A DNA stretch of 21,427 nucleotides, taken from contig JANKJI020000002.1 in assembly GCA_024626585.2 (NCBI GenBank), forward strand, positions 113,133,462-113,154,888, given 5' to 3'. The translations under genes and the position numbers were made by a program. The notes below the pieces were generated by a model. That model saw nothing but the letters and a program-made list of their open reading frames with translations. It had not been told where the DNA came from and did not search any database. Below are positions 2,955-21,427 of the stretch, piece after piece (position 1 is the first letter of the stretch; every line of letters starts with the position of its first letter). This DNA comes from Ginkgo biloba (lineage: Eukaryota > Plantae > Ginkgophyta).

Positions 2955-3440
2955 CCTACATACACACCTCAATGTACGCTACTGTGCGATTGTGTGTGAA
3001 AAGTGCAACATAAACCAATGGAAATGGACATGTAATAGAAAGATAATATCATATGCTTTGCAGGAAAAGAGAAATGTGTTTAGTTCAATTCATGTTGTTC
3101 ATTCATTCATGATTTTCAGCATGTATATTATTAGTAGTGAGGATTGCACATGTAATCATTCATTTCTTTNNNNNNNNNNGCCTTGCTAATTAGATTCAAA
3201 ATATGCACTATAAAAGGACTTAACGCAATAAAAAATTAAATTGAGAAATCAGATTCTCTACTACAATTCAAGTATGAAATCAATTGATAAGTGCAACTTT
3301 TCTTTCCCTTTCAAAATGAAAACAAGGCAGTGGAAAATAAACCCAAGAAGTTGAAAACCCTAGAAAGACATGTGATTCCAATGAGGAATGAGAAGGAGAT
3401 GACTAATGAAAGTGTTTTTTCCTTTATAAGAGGACTTAGC
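2955..3440. repeat. Dispersed repeat, copy A (internally shorter; probably a non-autonomous TE)
   Basis: Collinear with 10362-11185 from cctacatacacacctcaatg to ataagaggacttagc. The best segment (3291-3397 vs 11036-11142) has 6 mismatches in ~107 bp; other parts are more diverged. Confidence 0.92.
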
Positions 3441-6067: not shown

Positions 6068-6255
6068 AATGATGACATGGCGGCATGGGATGGCATGGCA
6101 ACGTGATGACGTGGCAATAGTTAAGGTGGTCAAACCTGTCCAAGTCAAGTCAAAATTGGTCAAAGTCTAGCCAAATTGGTCAAACCCAATCAAAATCGGT
6201 CAAAACCGGTCACAAACTACTCAAATCAGTCACAATCCAGTCAAAGGCGGTCGAA
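6068..6255. repeat. TE-terminal-type array: tgacgtggca-like motifs then ~10-bp (aaaYYggtca)n units
   Basis: atgacatggc and atgacgtggca, then ggtcaaa/gtcaa/ggtcaca repeated more than 10 times at about 5-10 bp spacing. Confidence 0.75.
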
Positions 6256-6266
6256 GAAGGTTGTAC

Positions 6267-6378
6267 AAGCCATACAATAGTAAATGATGACATCAACAAA
6301 AGCTATACATCAGTAAATGATGACGTCAACCAAGAAGCCGTACAACAGATAATGGTGACATCAGCAATAAGGCTGTGT
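6267..6378. repeat. 33-35 bp tandem repeat, 3 copies plus a partial
   Basis: aagccatacaatagtaaatgatgacatcaacaa (6267), aagctatacatcagtaaatgatgacgtcaaccaag (6300), aagccgtacaacagataatggtgacatcagcaat (6335). Confidence 0.85.
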
Positions 6379-10361: not shown

Positions 10362-11185
10362 CCTACACGCACACCTCAATGCACGCTACTGGGTGATTGT
10401 GTGTGAAAAGTGCAACATAAACCAATGTAAATGGACATATAATAGATAGACAATATCATATGCTTTGTATGAAAAGAGAAATGTGTTCATTTCAATTCAA
10501 GATGTTCATTCATTCATGATTTTTAGCATGTATAAAATTGGTAGTGAGGATTACACACACAATGTAATCATTCATTTCTTTTCTCGCCTTACTAAGAGAT
10601 TTAAAAGAAAACTTTGGATTCTCTTTCGCTTTCTCTTTCTTTTCCTTTCAAAAAATATCAAGCATGTTAAAACAAGGACACACCCAAGAAAATCGCCCAA
10701 TCTAACTTTTAGGACAAATAACAAGAATTCCACTACAACAGGGCAACAAGGGACTCACTGCTTGAAAGAGGACAACAAGCCAATGCATTGCTAAAAATAG
10801 GGCAACAAAGCTACTACGTTGCCATAAGCAGGGCAACGAGCAACGATTGTGAAATATGGCAAAAACAAATAGAATTTCACATAAGCACGGGCAGTAAGAA
10901 GAGCGAGAAGGCCCTTTTGAGCAGTGAAAACCTCGAGTGCAACAAATATGCACTGTAAAAGGAGTTAAGATAGCATAAAATCAGATTGAGAAATCTAAAT
11001 CTCCACTACAATTCAAGTATGAATTCAACTGATAAGTGCAACTTTTCTTTCCCTTTCAAAATGAAAACAAAGCAGTGGAAAATAAATCCAAGAAACCGAA
11101 AACCCTAGAAAGACATATGATTCCAATGAGGAATGAGAAGGAAGCAACCAACAAAAGTGGTCATTCCTTCATAAGAGGACTTAGC
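10362..11185. repeat. Dispersed repeat, copy B (longer; extra ~340 bp at ~10606-10943)
   Basis: Same orientation and collinear with 2955-3440 on both sides of the extra block. Confidence 0.92.
10741..10899. repeat. Degenerate ~30-bp tandem array with a gggcaacaag core
   Basis: Cores at 10741, 10770, 10800, 10831, ~10858 and 10889. Confidence 0.75.
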
Positions 11186-12695: not shown

Positions 12696-14209
12696 NNNNN
12701 NNNNNNNNNNNNNNNNNNNNNNNNNNNNNNNNNNNNNNNNNNNNNNNNNNNNNNNNNNNNNNNNNNNNNNNNNNNNNNNNNNNNNNNNNNNNNNNTCCAA
12801 TGGTTGTAGACCTATCATCAAACTCAAACAAGGAATGGTGCAAGGATGAATTCACAGTGAATTCGTTCATAGCCATTAGGGATAAAGAAAGACCCCACCC
12901 AAAAGGGCGGTTCTCTGGTTCAAACCAAACTATGTGAAATTAATGATCTGTAAATGCTATGATTGGGAAAAAGTTTGGTAGACTGATGCAGAATTGATGA
13001 AATGGACTGATTCATATGAGTGAATTGACACACCATCAACCCATTCAGCTCCTTTCCTCCATGCAATCATACCACCATCACGCTTTCCCTTCAAAGCTCC
13101 CTTTCCTAGAGCTCAATCAAATTCTAGAAATTTGAAATTTGTCATGTCAAATAAACAATAAAATTACAGAATTACTTAAACAAGAACATTGAGAATTTGC
13201 AATATAGAAGGTTGAATCTAGAAGTAGACCCAACCAACTCAAACTTTTGAGCCTTCAGCCATATACACATCGCCAGTATGCTGAGATATACGAGAAATAT
13301 TGGCTGCTGATACCACCCTAGAATGAGAAGCCCTGCCACTGAGTGAAGTAGATGGAGTTACAGAAGAAAGCCCTCAACATTAATGACAAAGGGCCAAGAG
13401 GAATATATTGAAATCACTCCCTTTGGGGCCACATTTCACAACTTTGGAGGCTGCTTATTGTACTTTTCCTTATTGTGGAGAGAACGGTGAAGCTTATATT
13501 AGTGTTAGTGATAGGTCTTTTCCCTTTTTATAATTAATAATTAAAAAAAATGATCAATTCTCCAGGTTTCAAGGGTATGGTAGGTGCTAGTGAGTTGGTT
13601 GCATCCACCAGGGTTCTGCATGTAGGATACCATCTGGGTTCGTCTCCATTATGTTTTGGCACTGAGATATGGTTGCGGTACATAGCCAAGGAATATTAGG
13701 TGAGTATTGACATCCAAGGAGTATCGGATATGGATATGGACATGGCATGAGAGGGGGAGTATGTTGTAACCTAAGTTACAACTTCTGGNNNNNNNNNNNN
13801 NNNNNNNNNNNNNNNNNNNNNNNNNNNNNNNNNNNNNNNNNNNNNNNNNNNNNNNNNNNNNNNNNNNNNNNNNNNNNNNNNNNNNNNNNNNNNCTACATC
13901 CTGGTTGTATCTTATGATATTGTTGCTTTATTTATTGCTTTGTTGCAGTAGATTTATATAGTATATGACTAATGATTATTGCCAAAACAATGAACCAACT
14001 GTTGATGTGTGATTGCTTCAGGAAAGTGAAGTAGCATGCAAATAGATTGAACAAAGTGTATGTTTTCTTAGTATTGCCTTTCAAGTAGGAAATCTTATGG
14101 TTGCAGAATTAAACTAAAATGCAAGAATAGCTTCAAGAATATTCCAGGCATGAATTTCAGAGGGAAGGCAGACAATTGACAACTTCAGTTGTGAATTCTT
14201 TTTGTACAG

Positions 14210-14273
14210 ATTTCTAACATCAACACCGTTGAAGAAATATAGCCAGCATGTCAACTGTCACAGCAAATATCAG
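14210..14273 (+). CDS. Possible upstream exon of the AsmA-like gene (targeting-peptide-like)
   Basis: Acceptor tttttgtacag and donor cag|gtttcc. The open frame FLTSTPLKKYSQHVNCHSKYQ joins in phase 0 to 14494. No start codon was found for it; the alternative is the in-frame ATG at 14470. Confidence 0.4.
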
Positions 14274-14493
14274 GTTTCCCCTTTTTCTTGATATTTGGTA
14301 TTTGTGCTTGGCTCAGAGTGTATAGACTTCTTTTGTGCTTACACCTTTGGGGAAAATTACACTTTTTGTGGACGGAAGTCCATGCATTAGCCTATGTATT
14401 TGCTGATTTGGCTTGGAGAGCACATTATTTTTTGTTTGCACTGATGGGTTATTGTTGCTGGAAACTAAAATGTTTAGAATGCTTATGTTACAG

Positions 14494-14839
14494 GCTATTT
14501 TGAGATGGAATAGATCCCTTAGCCCATTGCATGCAAACTCCAGTCACAATGCCTTCTACAGTTCAAGTTCCTGGTCCAAGGGAATTTTCACGAGTTATTT
14601 TGGTCAAAACTTTGTCAGTGTCAAGAACTTTGACCATTTGTCCAGGCATGGTAGAGCAAAGGCTGGCCAACGTGTTAATGTGCTTGTGAAATGGACCAAA
14701 AGCTTGCTATTCAATCTTATCAAAGTTTTTGGCACACTTTGTTTGATTATCTCTCTAGTCATAATTGCAGCACCATCCTTCTTATCATCGTCTGTTGGGC
14801 TACATTCTGCAGTATGGTTAACCAATAAAGTGATTCCAG
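14494..14839 (+). CDS. Exon of a host gene: Ser/basic-rich N-terminal extension, TM helix and start of an AsmA-like (repeating beta-groove) N-terminal domain
   Basis: Acceptor ttatgttacag and donor ccag|gttttg (phase 1), no stops. AILRWNRSLSPLHANSSHNAFYSSSSWSKG...KWTKSLLFNLIKVFGTLCLIISLVIIAAPSFLSSSVGLHSAVWLTNKVIP. Confidence 0.72.
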
Positions 14840-15023
14840 GTTTTGTATTGCTTTTACTCTGCAAACATTGCCAGCAGCCTGCTAGTTTTTAGTCTTTCAT
14901 TATAAACATGCTTATCAGTAAGTAGAAACTGTCTTCCTGCTGCTTATAGTAGAAGCATTTCACATTAGTAGGGAGCATTTTGGAGCTTTGAAACTATCAG
15001 TGATTGATTAAAACACTTTACAG

Positions 15024-15182
15024 GTAAAGCTTCAATAAAGTCCATATCAATTGGATGGACAACACCTGTAAGCATAGAGGAGGTCTTGCTAGAAGGCACA
15101 GATGGTAAAACTGTTCTTGTCATTCCCAAGATAGAGACAAAAGCTTCATTGTGGTCTTTTATTGCTGGCAGAGCCGGCTTTG
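15024..15182 (+). CDS. Next exon of the same gene (beta-strand-rich AsmA-like N-terminal domain)
   Basis: 184-bp GT-AG intron at 14840-15023, acceptor actttacag, strong donor tttg|gtgagt, 159 bp, phase 1-1. GKASIKSISIGWTTPVSIEEVLLEGTDGKTVLVIPKIETKASLWSFIAGRAGFG. Confidence 0.78.
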
Positions 15183-16040
15183 GTGAGTGGAAGTTAGAAC
15201 TATTCCTTCCTTTGCTCAGTTAATTGTTTCTTTTTCATGTTGATCCAACCTCAGTTCACTGTTGCAAGGTCTGCCACGTAGAATGTTAAAGTAAATATAA
15301 TATTCTACCAGTCCGCCATATACAATGTATTAGTGCCATTTTCAACAGGTCGTCAATGTGAAGGTTCAAAGTATTCTTTGTTTTCCATCCCTTTTGTTTC
15401 TATTGTTATGTGCTGTTTGTTCACATTTTGAATATGTAAGGCAATGCTGTATTCCTTATCAGGAATGTGTGTTTTCCAATTCCTTCATTAACTTGCCCCC
15501 TTCTAAACATGCACTGGTGTAATGGTGAGCCCTGTTTCAGTTGCAGTTAAGGATTGTTTTTTTCTTTGAGCCAACTAGCCAGATCTCAGGGGACCCCTCA
15601 CTGTTGCACAAATGGTTGGCAACTGTTTGGCTTTACACATTCCATGTTCACAACATCCATTTGCTCTGTGATCTAGTGGATGAGATGCAACACCTTCAAA
15701 TACCAATTCAAGCAAGTTGTTCATGTGCCTAAACATCCTTGGCATTCATGCATTTAGGATTCCAGTTAGTGCTTCCAGTTTGAAATACAGTCAAGCTAGC
15801 TACGGGGTCTGAATAGGCAAGCATGCATATAAGCTCATTGGAGTCCGCAATTGCCAATAGCAAAGGAATCCTGTCCTGTCATTAGAGCTAACCGACCAAC
15901 ACCTAAAACCTTACCTAAGGATCTTGAGCTAACCTCTATCTGTTGTAGGATCTAACCTATGTGTTGCAATTTTTAGGTCATGGTCTGTTGCACGAGGAGG
16001 AAGAAATCAGGAGAGATAATCACCTTGATCTTCAACATGA

Positions 16041-16400
16041 GTTTCAAGCGCTGACAATATTGTCACCAAAAAATTTGTGGATGGAGGATCGAGTGTTAAC
16101 GTATTCCTGAAGTCAACCTTGGTCAAATTGGGGGAACCTGACTATATTCCTCCCAATTATTCCATACAGTTAGCCAACCAGACTGAGATCCGCCCTCTTG
16201 GTTCCTTATTAGACGTACCTATTACAGTTGAGGGTGTTACTGTAAGACAAGATTTCACAGTGGTTTGCATCAAGACTAGTGCCTCGTAGCCAACATTATT
16301 AGGGCAGCAATGGTTCTATGATACTCAAGCAATTCAAGATTGTGGGAAATGTACATTCACCCTCATGGGCAATGGTAAATGGGTCGTCATCTCCTTGGTT
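16041..16400 (+). mobile_element. Ty3/gypsy (Tat/Athila-like) retropepsin aspartic protease remnant
   Basis: FVDGGSSVNVF...KLG...IQLANQTEIRPLG.LLDVPITVEGV....DFTVV...*PTLLGQQWF contains the catalytic DGGS motif and an LLGRPW-type motif. One stop at 16287-16289. Confidence 0.88.
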
Positions 16401-16984
16401 TCTCATGGATCCCGCACCAAAAATTGCACGGACCTTGAGATTCCAAACACTTGTTATATGTACAACACTGCGTCAAGCACTACCATTGCCAAAGAAGCCA
16501 CTTCCAACTCCTATTCTGAAGTGGAAGTGGCTAAAGATCCTCATAACATGCTCAAGGACTGCCCAGAAGAGCCTAACCTACATGGCAAAATTGAAATCGA
16601 AAATGAGGAATTCTATGTTCAAACACATGTTGCACTAGTTGCAAGGCACATATAGAAGAAGTTGGAGGAGATGGAGGCCGAGATTTGACAGTTGAATGCA
16701 CAGAGACAACTTTCAATAGACCCTCCAAAACATTCGCTCCGAATCTATGAAAGGAGAAGGAAGCCGGTGGTGTTTGAGGAGCAAGCTAAGGAACCAACGT
16801 CGAAAGAAGAAGATGAAGAGGAATTGTAAGGTGACAAAGACGAGTCATCTAAAGAGTCTAAAGAGAGAGGACCAAGGCATAAAAGATCAAATAGAGATTA
16901 GAAGTTGATATAAAATGTCAAGCAGTTTAAGAACATGCAGATTCTAGATTATGATATAACGACACCCGATACTTCATTTTGAGC
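16401..16984 (+). mobile_element. Continuation of the retroelement frame; coiled-coil/acidic, gag-like segment with multiple stops
   Basis: Same frame as the protease: ...*KKLEEMEAEI*QLNAQRQL...EEDEEEL*...NVKQFKNMQILDYD. No RT motif appears before the gap. Confidence 0.5.
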
Positions 16985-17530
16985 NNNNNNNNNNNNNNNN
17001 NNNNNNNNNNNNNNNNNNNNNNNNNNNNNNNNNNNNNNNNNNNNNNNNNNNNNNNNNNNNNNNNNNNNNNNNNNNNNNNNNNNNTGTTTAAATATGTCAT
17101 GTCCATTCATTTGAATGTATCACTTTGAATAGTTTCTCAGTAAACATCCATTGTCATAACTCTCTTCTTCTTTTCTAGTTTCAGATCTGTGAGCAATTTT
17201 ACAATTTTGTGCTAGTAATAAATTGCACCATGCGAAGATTGAATATTGATTTCTCAAGAATATTGTTTGCACTCCTTAAATGCAACGATAGTAGGCATAT
17301 AAGTGTATGGACTTAAAGACCCAAACTTGAGATGGATTACATAGTAAATTGCAACATGGTTGTTGGGGAACCAGAGATGTACTTTCATTCTAATGCAACT
17401 TGGAATATGTTAAAAACAAGTGCGTGCTAGTGTGCATTCACTCACTTCAAAGTGTTGAATTTGTTCAAACGGATCAAGGAAGCCCCATGCTCTTCTTCCT
17501 TTTTTCTACCAACCATTTTCATCAGGTTAT

Positions 17531-17930
17531 TGTTGGCTCAGTGTCCAAGGATCAAGTTGCCTATAGATGATGACTGTCTTGAGTTTTGTTGCTAGTGAGG
17601 TGGGCCAAGTGACACCTAAAGGGGGCCATTTTGGTCGCCAGTGCAACTAAAATAAATAAAGAGATGTCTAAAGTATTGAAGCGATTACTAGTCAAAATGG
17701 GCCGCAATTCAGATTGTGGAAATTGCAACTGGCATGGGGACAAAGTTACTGGCCACGACCTCGTTCCAAAAGAAGAGAAGCAACTAGGAACCGATAAAGC
17801 TGGGGTTGCATAAAAACAAAAGGAACGGACGTCGGTCGATGTGGACGTGCCACTATAGTCAGATGATCGCTCCCTATCACCCCCAATAGAGGAAATCCAA
17901 ATGTTGTCCCCAGTTGGCCCCAAAATGTAG
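17531..17930 (+). mobile_element. LINE (L1 clade) ORF1 remnant with degenerate zinc knuckle
   Basis: CWLSVQG..CL*MMTVLSFVASEVGQV resembles ORF1 WV.LP.LP......L..IAS.IG. After a frameshift, CGNCNWHGDKVTGH (17715-17756) fits CX2CX4HX4C with the last two ligands mutated. It lies upstream of ORF2 on the same contig and strand. Confidence 0.5.
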
Positions 17931-18681
17931 GAAAAAGGAGTTTAAACTCCATGGCACTGCAAGGCTCCTTGGCTTAGCACATCCACAACCATAGTTTCCA
18001 AACGCAGGTGGGTGGAGTTAATTCCCAACGAGCCACTGGAAATAAAATGGTAGGACTAGTTGTAGGTTTTTGAGCAAGGTCTTGATAAATCATAGTGTAA
18101 ATTGTTAATCACAAGGCTTGGAAACCCACTTTCAAATTCATATTTTGGCAAGGGATCTAGTATGTAAAAATAATCATAACTATAAAGTAATAGAGGATAC
18201 AAAACATACCTATGGTAAAACCCACATAATTGTAGTTTGAGTTTCTTACACATGACTTGGAGTATAATCAATATAATATCTTGGAATAGGTGGAACTAGC
18301 TTAATTTCTCATGATGGTGCCTTTATTTTATGATCAATCAGTCATAATTTTTATGATTGGTATGGTAGCATATTATCATGAATTATTGTAAATAAAAATT
18401 AGTTATCCCCTAGAATCAACTTCCTCTTAGAAGTAAGTAACCTTTAAATTGAAACCCTAAGGAACCTTATGTGTCATCGAAACAAGATAATACGTGGCCT
18501 TTGTCTATGCTTGAAGATTCCCATTCTTCTCTATATTAATGATCTAGGAGAAATAAAAGGACTTGTATGTAACAGAGCATAATATGAGAGGCAGATTTGG
18601 ATCTTCTAGAGAATTGATGACCTTTGGCATGCAGGCTATTTTGGAAAGTAGGAATAAAGACCCTAAATACAAAGATAATCA

Positions 18682-19903
18682 ATGAAAGTAGTGCCATGGA
18701 ATGTTAGAGGATTAGAATCAATGGACAAAAGAGCATCGGTGAGAAGATTTTAGAATATAGTTGTGAATTTGGAAATTTGGTGCCTACACGAGGTTAAAAT
18801 GGTTGGCAATGGCTTAATATTAGCATTAGAATATATCTGGAAATAATGGCTACAGATTAGCATTTCTATATATTTGGTGTTAAGACCCCATATATGCATC
18901 ATTTTGAAGGAAGAGGTGGTGCAACTCTTCTTATAAGAGGGGATTTGGCCTTAAATGAGATTAGCAATGGTGTTAGTCCTTGTAAGAGGGTAGTTTGGTC
19001 AGTATTTAAAAGTGCATATAGTACTTTTGGAGTGGCCTCAATCTCTGCTCCTAGTTTTCCAGAAGAAAGGAAATTGTTGTGGGATTGGCTCGCAAACAAT
19101 CTAAATTGTTATGATATTGCATGGATATTTTGAGGGGATTTTAATATGATAGAAAATCCTGGAGATAAGAAAGGAGGCCATTTGTTTGCTTGGAAACTGG
19201 AAGAGAGGATCTTGGTTTAGAATGAAAAGAAGGATTGGAATTGGACCCATTGTATAAACTTGATCCTTCTCCTTGTAGATTTACATGGTCCAATCAATAT
19301 TCTAGAAAGAAAATAATCTTGTCTAGATTGGAAAGATTTATGATTCCTATTTATGGATCTTTTAAGGCCAAATCAATTATTGTTAAACTTCTTGTAATTT
19401 TAGATCATTCTCCAATAGTAGCAATCCTAGAAGAATGCAATGAGAAAATTCACATTAATGATTCCTTGTTCAAGTTAAATTTTTCCTTGATTATGTGAAA
19501 GGCATGCCAAGAAGGGGTTAAAAAATTATGGACTCTTTTCCCCAAGCCGGATGGTAAAGTTGGTTCAATTCATTCATGGAAGAGTGTTATTAATAGTTGC
19601 ATTTTTAAGGATATTTGGGAAGCAAGTTGCTAATATCAGATGAAGGGGACATCACTTCAATGAAGCACAATTCATGAAAGCCACCAAAGTAGTGGAAGAA
19701 GATCCATTTAATGAAGCAAAATAGAGGAACCTTTTGGAGATTAAACATGAGATTAAAAAATACGAGAACTACATTGATCAAAGAGTTAGAGTTTGAAGCA
19801 AGATGAATTGGATTAAACAAGGTGATAGACGATCTAAATTCTTCTTTAATATTCTTAAAGGAAATAAAATGAAAGCCAGAATGGATGTAATCAAAGATGG
19901 AGA
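18682..19903 (+). mobile_element. L1-type LINE ORF2 pseudogene: APE endonuclease and linker, cut by a gap before the RT
   Basis: Ordered motifs MKVVPWNVRGL, CLHEVK, GRGGATLL, VASISAP..ERKLLWDWL, WIF*GDFNMIE..DKKGG, FTWSN..SRLERF, LDHSPI, FKLN and WIKQGDRRSKFFF, with stops and frameshifts. Confidence 0.93.
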
Positions 19904-20206
19904 NNNNNNNNNNNNNNNNNNNNNNNNNNNNNNNNNNNNNNNNNNNNNNNNNNNNNNNNNNNNNNNNNNNNNNNNNNNNNNNNNNNNNNNNNNNNNNNNN
20001 NNNCATGCTTATTCAATGAATAACAATTAACCATCACGTTGGTTTAAGTGGGTCCCACTGGTGTAGTGCATCCAAAATTATGAAGGGGGAAACTACAAAC
20101 CGTGCAAGATGAAAATTTTATATTTGGTCGATGAGGATGTTCAACGTTTGTGGTCGGTGAGATGCATGTAGGCAAATTGACACATTGGGTTTAGCCTTTT
20201 CATTGC

Positions 20207-20390
20207 GATTGCAATTGTAGCAAATGGTTTATGGTTGCAATAATTCTGAGTTCCATTTTGTTGTTTGGTTGCAATGCTACAACTTGATCTTAGGTTGCAA
20301 CAATATCGAATGTTCTTCGGTTGTAACCATGCACTTTTATCTCCAGTTGTAAGGCAACTTGTTGTGATGAGGATTAGTTGTTGGTCGCAA
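20207..20390 (+). repeat. Periodic GGTTGCAA motif array (mostly 26-bp spacing), like CACTA subterminal repeats
   Basis: Motif or variants at 20207, 20233, 20267, 20293, 20319, 20345 and 20383. Confidence 0.7.
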
Positions 20391-21119
20391 CACTAATTGA
20401 CAATAATAAAGATGTAAATATAATTAAGTTAGTTATCAATGTGGCATCTTCTATAATATTTGTAACCACTAGTAATGAAAAGACACGAAAGCATGTATCG
20501 CCACAAGGCAACAACTTGTAAATGAACAATCGATTAATCATTCATGGAGTTCATGAAGTATTCAACAAACTTTTGTATTATGAATTCTTTTGGTAATAAA
20601 ATTGAATTTGTTTTTTGTAGACCACAACCCTAGATATTCATTGTGGATGCATGATTCATTGGTGAGAGTAGTGCACTCGTAACTCCTCTATATCTATCAA
20701 GGGTACGATAACATTTCTTCGTTATCATACATCTTACATGTTGGCAGTTGATTACGATGTGCTAAACGATTGACCTAAAAATTAGAAAACACGTTTTAGG
20801 CAATATGGTTAGCCTTATCTAATTTGATCCATGATCTCGAGTGAATAGAGCCATCTTTATCTGTAATGCAGTAGACTTGTCTTTTCCCATGTTAGTCCTA
20901 GGGGTGATGTCTAAGGAGCATGCAAAGAATTCAGGAGGCAGACAACTCCCAAATTGGCAAACTACTTTTGACTTTGAAACAAGCCATTAAGGCTAATTGT
21001 TGGCCAATATATAGTTGCTAGTTCACTTATAAAGGCAATAAGATCCTCCACTAGGTCCCACCTTAATAAATTGGTGGATGCTAGAGTAGGAACCAATTGA
21101 CCATGTCAATCAATTGTTG

Positions 21120-21427
21120 TTGTTCCTAATCCCTATTGCACTATCTGTAACACAACTAGGGCAGGGAATTTGTTGCACACCTAGTAGCTAGTAGTCTTAA
21201 CAATGTTGTCCCTAGTCCTAAGCATACTATCGCTAGCATAACTAGAGCAGGGAGAATATTACACACCTATTGGTTGGTGCTTCTTCCTCTACCATACTAG
21301 GTCCATGGCTCACTATCGTTAATGCAACTAGGGCAAGGAGAATACTTCTCACCTATTAGCTAGTGCTTTTTCCTCTATCGTCCCTAGTCCCTAACGCACT
21401 GTGGTTAGTGCAACTAGAACAAGGAGA
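21120..21427. repeat. 86-bp tandem repeat, at least 3.5 diverged copies, running off the window end
   Basis: The anchor aactagRRcaRgga occurs at 21154, 21240, 21326 and 21412, exactly 86 apart. Confidence 0.92.

Follow-up and report, generated by a model that had tools for sequence, protein, structure and literature searches.

A Ginkgo biloba locus carrying part of a gene for an unstudied land-plant subfamily of candidate AsmA-like proteins

Does the nuclear DNA of a land plant encode a membrane-anchored, AsmA-like protein other than the plastid protein TIC236? The question is raised by a stretch of 21,427 nucleotides from Ginkgo biloba (hereafter the window), in which a sequence-only reading had claimed an intron-containing plant gene for such a protein, with its nearest kin among bacterial hypothetical proteins. 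Here we describe the exons of this locus, the family to which they belong and the role that the encoded protein may have.

Exons and introns of the Ginkgo copy

Three open exons on the + strand, 14210-14273, 14494-14839 and 15024-15182, are joined by GT-AG introns in compatible phases. The two larger ones had been claimed before as stop-free and linked by a phase-compatible intron; both are indeed open in the frames given for them, and all of the sequence motifs quoted in that reading are found in their products. The third, in-frame exon 14210-14273 was absent from the earlier description. Our searches found no second intact gene in the window, in keeping with the view that every other coding remnant is broken. 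The features of the locus are as follows.

13550-13677, + strand: first exon of database gene model Gb_37697; matches entry P0001 alone, and spliced relatives show no match
14210-14273, + strand: coding exon, 64 nt; AG/GT borders, open frame, phase-compatible
14274-14493, + strand: intron, 220 nt, GT-AG, phase 0, T-rich; missing from transcript L001
14494-14839, + strand: coding exon, 346 nt, entered in phase 0 and left in phase 1; counterpart of Riccia exon 3
14494-14700, + strand: Ser/Arg/Lys-rich, acid-poor segment, by composition; relatives show the same bias
14716-14772, + strand: single predicted transmembrane (TM) helix; hydropathy of 2.59 for 19 aa, modelled by AlphaFold as one unbroken helix in P0002
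14773-14839, + strand: conserved Pro, a helix and the beginning of the AsmA-type soluble N-terminal domain, from plant alignments and models
14840-15023, + strand: intron, 184 nt, GT-AG, phase 1, T-rich; position common to liverwort and moss-like genes
15024-15182, + strand: coding exon, 159 nt, phase 1 at both ends; counterpart of Riccia exon 4
15183-15223, + strand: read-through in Gb_37697, past the donor to a stop at 15221
15183-21427, + strand: first part of a long intron of 6.2 kb or more; strong donor GTGAGT, decayed repeat-like sequence, two 100-N gaps

A spliced transcript from a relative (L001) matches the three exons contiguously, with the introns missing, at nucleotide identities of 70%, 70% and 82%; its positions 310-380 align with exon 14210-14273. 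Given that the nine coding exons of the gene in the liverwort Riccia have borders at residues 35, 56, 155 and about 208, the window carries the counterparts of exons 2-4. Exon 14210-14273, which matches a gymnosperm-like profile with E 0.006, encodes 21 presequence residues and corresponds to Riccia exon 2 (residues 35-56). Exon 14494-14839 is contained in the longest stop-free segment of the window and encodes the end of the presequence, the TM helix and the next helix, its product being 53% identical over 117 aa to P0002, the closest full-length relative. Exon 15024-15182 encodes the Gly-Trp motif and the opening three beta strands of the AsmA-type N-terminal domain, which the structure models also show; its product aligns with the AsmA N-terminal profile. 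In Riccia as well as a moss-like locus, the donors flanking this last exon sit behind the same two codons; the moss-like counterpart of the exon is also 159 nt, and the same set of seven conserved exon blocks recurs in two further genomic contigs. The junctions of the claimed plant gene are thus backed by both L001 and identical intron positions in liverwort and moss-like genes. A chance reading frame was ruled out by the related spliced transcript, the conserved intron positions and the length of the stop-free segment, and bacterial contamination by introns that sit at conserved positions.

Crude dN/dS values of 0.29-0.64 for the TM and beta exons point to purifying selection, and the Ser/Arg/Lys-rich segment 14494-14700 is fast-evolving (0.42-0.72). 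Owing to its 159 nt and phase 1 at both ends, exon 15024-15182 could be left out without a frameshift. Exactly this block is missing from one gymnosperm-like transcript product (P0067), and its second half from a Sphagnum isoform (P0046), gaps from which alternative splicing of the first beta strands appears possible.

Part of the Ginkgo biloba gene model Gb_37697 (entry P0001) is 100% identical to the product of exon 15024-15182; the entry, which spans the junctions, was included as one row in alignments A2, A5 and A6. It is truncated at 245 aa because the model reads through the donor to the stop at 15221. We rejected both its stop, as donor read-through, and its first exon, which no relative supports and which, by comparison with spliced relatives, is probably a prediction artefact. 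Within the TM helix, at 14727-14729, the window encodes Phe and the model Ile; another assembly version, another individual or a sequencing error are the alternatives for this difference.

Neither exon 1 nor exons 5-9 turned up in the window when it was searched with tblastn, nhmmer and hmmsearch (1064 segments), and the ~375 C-terminal residues (five exons) would lie beyond it; the simplest explanations are a long intron or a gap in the assembly. We judged separately whether the family is real but its Ginkgo copy a truncated remnant, as the 245-aa model suggests, and hold this to be quite improbable. The 6.2 kb downstream contain no further exon and the 14 kb upstream no first exon, and splice support came from a related transcript, with none reached from Ginkgo itself. 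However, the three exons are all open, with intact splice sites at ancestral positions and dN/dS below 1, the stop in Gb_37697 arises by reading through a strong donor, and the seven 100-N gaps in the window may hide exons. Gymnosperm introns are, moreover, usually long and filled with repeats.

Plant members, bacterial kin and the AsmA-like superfamily

The main database search used exon 15024-15182 alone (52 residues) against one representative per 50%-identity cluster. Besides Ginkgo, named matches came from Riccia, Calypogeia, Physcomitrium, Sphagnum, Selaginella, Diphasiastrum, Adiantum and Ceratopteris, and members are found in liverworts, mosses, lycophytes, ferns and gymnosperms. The exon product is 44-71% identical to the other plant members, the upper value being reached by transcripts that we call gymnosperm-like from their similarity to Ginkgo. 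Full-length members, spliced transcripts with stop codons among them, comprise 529-623 aa and are mostly 35-55% identical between lineages. No angiosperm and no alga appeared among the named matches to this 52-residue query in 50%-identity representatives and a lossy word search, which missed some of its own query rows; absence from both groups is suggestive only.

Single-exon queries returned nothing from Pfam, NCBIfam, PDB sequences, plasmids, word searches or scans of related loci, full-length kin queries returned nothing from PDB sequences, NCBIfam, plasmids or phages, and a GTDB genome scan of low sensitivity gave no match to either of two patterns. Five long bacterial matches of the main search (P0012, P0016, P0018, P0021 and P0024) were discarded as repeat artefacts (LRR, RTX and similar). 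Two Sphagnum models, P0014 and P0047, are without an exon (profile 252-313) of which Sphagnum-like metagenome loci have an open copy (L009 2634-2870; L011 9289-9525), and by this comparison are probably mis-annotated; a similar truncation is seen in Physcomitrium isoform X3 and in the fern models P0013, P0015 and P0017.

The predicted layout of the family is a basic, Ser-containing presequence, one TM helix, a further helix, ~20 amphipathic beta strands and C-terminal helices. In Ginkgo, the first 68 residues of exon 14494-14839 include 12 Ser, 9 Arg/Lys and 1 acidic residue, and the segment is likely to belong to an organelle transit peptide. The sequence-only reading had put this Ser/Arg/Lys-rich, nearly acid-free extension at ~70 aa. 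Its composition stands, but its length does not: most full-length relatives carry an extension of ~105-145 aa (the Selaginella model has 55), because one more exon lies upstream. Presequences of the relatives are likewise acid-poor and Arg/Lys-rich (11-16%), a composition that by itself fits plastid and mitochondrion alike. The plastid-type cleavage motif V/I-x-A/C-A/S occurs in 4 of 13 presequences, which are non-independent rows, compared to 0.5 expected; three of the four carriers are ferns, and Ginkgo and the conifer-like sequences are without it. This count uses the strict form of the motif, and a looser pattern, defined post hoc, was left out. The single TM helix claimed for the protein is borne out by the best 19-residue hydropathy, at 14716-14772, and occupies the same position as in the bacterial kin. 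In the product of 14773-14839, Pro, Ser, Asn, Ile and Gly are invariant in the plant alignments.

Scanning the plant alignment against metagenomes yielded eight bacterial loci, and the closest non-plant relatives are metagenomic bacterial proteins of 447-1190 aa with a variable middle (L014-L022). These score 37-80 bits against a plant-only profile, with matches in the N-terminal 130 residues as well as the C-terminal block (E 8e-18 to 2e-6 for a database of 1e9), whereas reversed sequences gave no more than 3.4 bits and six E. coli AsmA-like paralogues at most 2.3 bits, which is noise. The 462-aa L015 protein is colinear with the plant family from end to end (HHalign probability 98.9, 26% identity, 355 columns). 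Like the plant proteins, the bacterial kin carry an N-terminal Pro...Gly-Trp...Leu-Trp block and a C-terminal Pro-x-x-Gly-Thr-x-x-x-Pro block; unlike them, they span 450-1200 aa, vary in the middle and include no characterised protein. The expectation, drawn from an N-terminal signature that these proteins share, that the nearest kin would be bacterial hypothetical proteins was thereby confirmed. Planctomycetes or Chlamydiae had been suggested more narrowly; the contigs carry no taxonomy, and the neighbouring genes examined did not assign them to a phylum. In an N-domain tree, which has no cyanobacterial row and whose outgroup includes an Aeromonas AsmA comparator without its N-terminus, the plants form one clade (95/90 support) and their fork with the bacterial kin is not resolved. 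Together with the shared intron positions, this clade argues for a plant family of one origin. The gene may have been gained horizontally, as the sequence-only reading suggested, or by endosymbiosis.

Several observations concern the neighbourhoods of these bacterial genes. A 550-aa relative (L016 4577-9557) lies directly after the housekeeping operon rpsB-tsf-pyrH-frr, and lpxB is nearby in related contigs (L022-L024), from which we take the hosts of this type to be diderm bacteria. A Peptidase_C25 (PorU-like) gene is found near both of the short relatives closest to the plant layout (L015 483-3626; L014 8312-10027), and a bacterial lipoxygenase gene (L017 3762-5384) is convergent with a 1170-aa relative. 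The gene adjoining L020 starts with a motif that may be planctomycete-like, which would agree with the affinity suggested by the sequence-only reading.

Evidence for the wider superfamily came from profile comparison. Against a profile of E. coli AsmA, YhjG and YicH plus three annotated AsmA-family proteins, the family N-domain gave an HHalign probability of 95.6 and a score of 55 (shuffles at most 13.5), the N-domain of the plants alone a probability of 91.4, and the N-domain without its TM helix a score of 35.9 (shuffles at most 12.7). The Aeromonas comparator lacks its N-terminus, and rerunning the N-domain test with it omitted left the result unchanged. The C-domain, taken with the bacterial kin, matched the AsmA C-terminal profile with probability 84 and score 40.6. 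The plant-only C-domain gave probability 1 against that profile and 98 against the C-domain of the bacterial kin, so the C-terminal link to AsmA runs via these kin.

The bacterial protein of L020 passes the Pfam DUF748 cut-off (53.6 vs 50 bits). The suggested comparison with Pfam AsmA, TamB and Chorein_N held in part: 7 of 23 members, Calypogeia included (E 1.3e-6), show weak DUF748 matches over the N-terminal region and three show weak AsmA matches, but all plant members stay below the Pfam and NCBIfam cut-offs (best DUF748 score 27 vs 50 bits) and none of the 23 has a Pfam match to TamB, Chorein_N or Mdm31. The missed cut-offs count against any single Pfam family, not against superfamily membership. 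DUF748, AsmA, DUF490 and Mdm31 are related by profile comparison, and DUF748 is related to TamB/AsmA (PMC4494059). DUF748 (PF05359) proteins are, along with kin L014-L022, the nearest non-plant relatives.

The AlphaFold model of P0002 (pLDDT 78.6, pTM 0.71) consists of the TM helix, a helix, ~20 strands with short helices interspersed and C-terminal helices. Strand face asymmetry is 3.9 compared to 2.0 in shuffles, none of 2000 of which scored as high, giving the strands one hydrophobic face, although amphipathic strands are equally seen in ordinary beta sandwiches. A Foldseek search with the full model against 350,542 chains gave no significant match; the top two, Vps13 and LPD-3 (E 0.012 and 0.015, TM 0.12-0.15), are both beta-groove lipid bridges. 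With the N-domain model the best E was 0.12 and the top matches were unrelated. The proposed layout of TM anchor, helix and beta strands therefore fits the predicted order, but the beta-groove fold found no significant Foldseek match. Collectively, the direct N-domain profile match, the C-domain match via bacterial kin and the DUF748 matches support membership of the AsmA-like superfamily at the level of sequence, as had been claimed.

At ~600 aa, the protein is of the short kind rather than the large TamB/YhdP type. The short bacterial AsmA type (E. coli AsmA 617 aa, YicH 569 aa, YhjG 686 aa; PF05170) is similar in size and shares the N-terminal TM anchor, the helix and the beta-rich soluble region, but identity to the plant family is very low, and presequence and introns occur only on the plant side. 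With TIC236/DEK5/SSG4 (plastid TamB) the family has in common a transit-peptide-like extension, one TM helix, the superfamily and, probably, location and topology. DEK5/TIC236 is, however, a 232.9 kD protein of 23 exons with a C-terminal TamB (DUF490) domain, known from angiosperms (PMC6683743), whereas the new family has a quarter of that size, 9 coding exons and no named angiosperm member. None of the 23 members matches DUF490/TamB at E up to 1, and the C-domain compared to E. coli TamB gave probability 0.1. We rejected a TIC236 orthologue on size and the missing DUF490, in line with the earlier claim, the distinction being drawn against the published DEK5 description. A VPS13 orthologue was rejected as well, given that the protein has only ~600 aa and no Chorein_N or other VPS13/BLTP Pfam match. 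VPS13 and BLTP1/LPD-3 are far larger and cytosol-facing, and their place at the top of the Foldseek results is not significant; VPS13/BLTP bridges and AsmA-like proteins have a common Chorein-N-like start (PMC10345924).

Family proteins sit in public databases as hypothetical, with the Riccia member auto-labelled 'AsmA-like C-terminal domain-containing' by UniRef. A topic search found no paper describing the family, nor did a search of the literature find any mention of six family gene identifiers, coverage of subscription journals being thin in both. We regard the family as an unstudied plant subfamily of the known AsmA-like superfamily, which itself is not new.

A candidate plastid-envelope lipid bridge and its alternatives

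What might such a protein do? From its sequence features, we favor a reading in which a nuclear land-plant gene encodes a short AsmA-like protein that acts as a lipid bridge of the plastid envelope, and give this chain as a whole a probability of roughly 0.55. The most certain of the inferred steps is that the N-terminal 105-145 residues serve as a plastid transit peptide and are cleaved. The TM helix would then be the anchor in the inner envelope, leaving the beta region to face the intermembrane space, as in DEK5/TIC236 and bacterial AsmA-like proteins (DEK5 topology, PMC6683743; family architecture and function, PMC10345924). There, the amphipathic strands may line a hydrophobic groove that shields acyl chains and lets glycerolipids move between inner and outer envelope. 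Least certain is the final step, in which an outer-membrane or intermembrane partner would complete the bridge; we propose a partner because the protein is no more than about the length of E. coli AsmA or YicH, and the C-terminal helices, along with the conserved Pro-Trp at the terminus, would probably bind it. YdbH, which needs its partner YnbE (PMC11126948), offers an analogy. On this reading, the envelope of the land-plant ancestor would already have had another bridge besides TIC236 and independent of it, which angiosperms seem to have lost.

The same place and fold could carry another cargo, with the protein acting as a tether or assembly factor for outer-envelope beta-barrels or the import machinery and moving little lipid; such a role was initially suggested for TamB and has been demonstrated by genetics for DEK5/TIC236. 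We consider this unlikely, although the one plastid member that has been characterised works in import and in the biogenesis of envelope proteins (PMC6683743) and AsmA and TamB were first tied to outer-membrane protein assembly (PMC10345924): the family has no DUF490/TamB domain of the kind found in TamB-type members, and no Omp85 gene was recognised beside the bacterial kin in the subset of neighbourhoods scanned. If the protein were instead a mitochondrial inner-membrane bridge, a plant counterpart of fungal Mdm31/32, the Arg/Lys-rich, acid-poor presequences would suit it, and Mdm31/32 belong to the same superfamily (PMC4494059), but an extension of 105-145 aa, the plastid-type cleavage motif in fern and liverwort members and the lack of a Mdm31 Pfam match make this very unlikely.

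A link to plastid peptidoglycan is also conceivable, in which the protein would be a bridge or spacer where the wall lies between the envelope membranes, lost with the wall toolkit in most angiosperms. The groups that bear members are those reported with a complete peptidoglycan gene set (PMC8227023, PMC10784329), and most plastid wall enzymes come from non-cyanobacterial bacteria (PMC8227023). This overlap of distributions is coarse, however, given that angiosperms lost many genes and that the family's absence from them was read from a lossy word search and from representatives at 50% identity. Asparagus and Citrus are among the angiosperms that retain the full toolkit (PMC10784329), no wall gene lies beside the bacterial kin scanned, and no algal member was found, yet some algae have a wall; we therefore see this link as rather unlikely. 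Similarly doubtful is a broader scenario in which land plants gained a second bridge from a non-cyanobacterial source that passes lipid across a peptidoglycan-containing plastid intermembrane space and was lost in flowering plants along with the wall toolkit. Were it true, walled plastids would have in this family an accessory component that has escaped notice, and a lipid route from inner to outer envelope besides TGD and TIC236.

Reviews name TIC236/DEK5 as the plastid AsmA-like protein and treat plastid beta-groove lipid transfer as unconfirmed (PMC10345924, PMC12096540), and a second envelope bridge would surprise plastid specialists. The apparent absence from angiosperms would explain why Arabidopsis-centred work overlooked the family. 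A short second member, found from liverworts to Ginkgo, would allow envelope lipid bridging to be tested directly in Physcomitrium, which has an annotated gene (LOC112285198), or a liverwort.

Repeats elsewhere in the window

The window as a whole has the character of repeat-rich eukaryotic DNA; N make up 11% of it and fall into 15 runs, of which seven measure exactly 100 N. The segment 8890-9072 gave a weak match to the Pfam plant mobile domain (E 0.029, below cut-off) and is probably a transposon remnant. Decayed coding-like stretches lie at 16040-16900 and 18690-19900. Their stop-free pieces have no Pfam match; by eye, the stretches may correspond to the protease region of a retrotransposon and the endonuclease region of a LINE. 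A dispersed repeat is present in two copies, 2955-3440 and 10362-11185, sharing blocks of 196 and 242 nt that are 86-90% identical, and these copies are likely LTR-like remnants. Short tandem arrays lie at 21139-21427, 1471-1623, 6138-6204 and 6267-6371, with periods of 86, 76, 20 and 33 nt, respectively.
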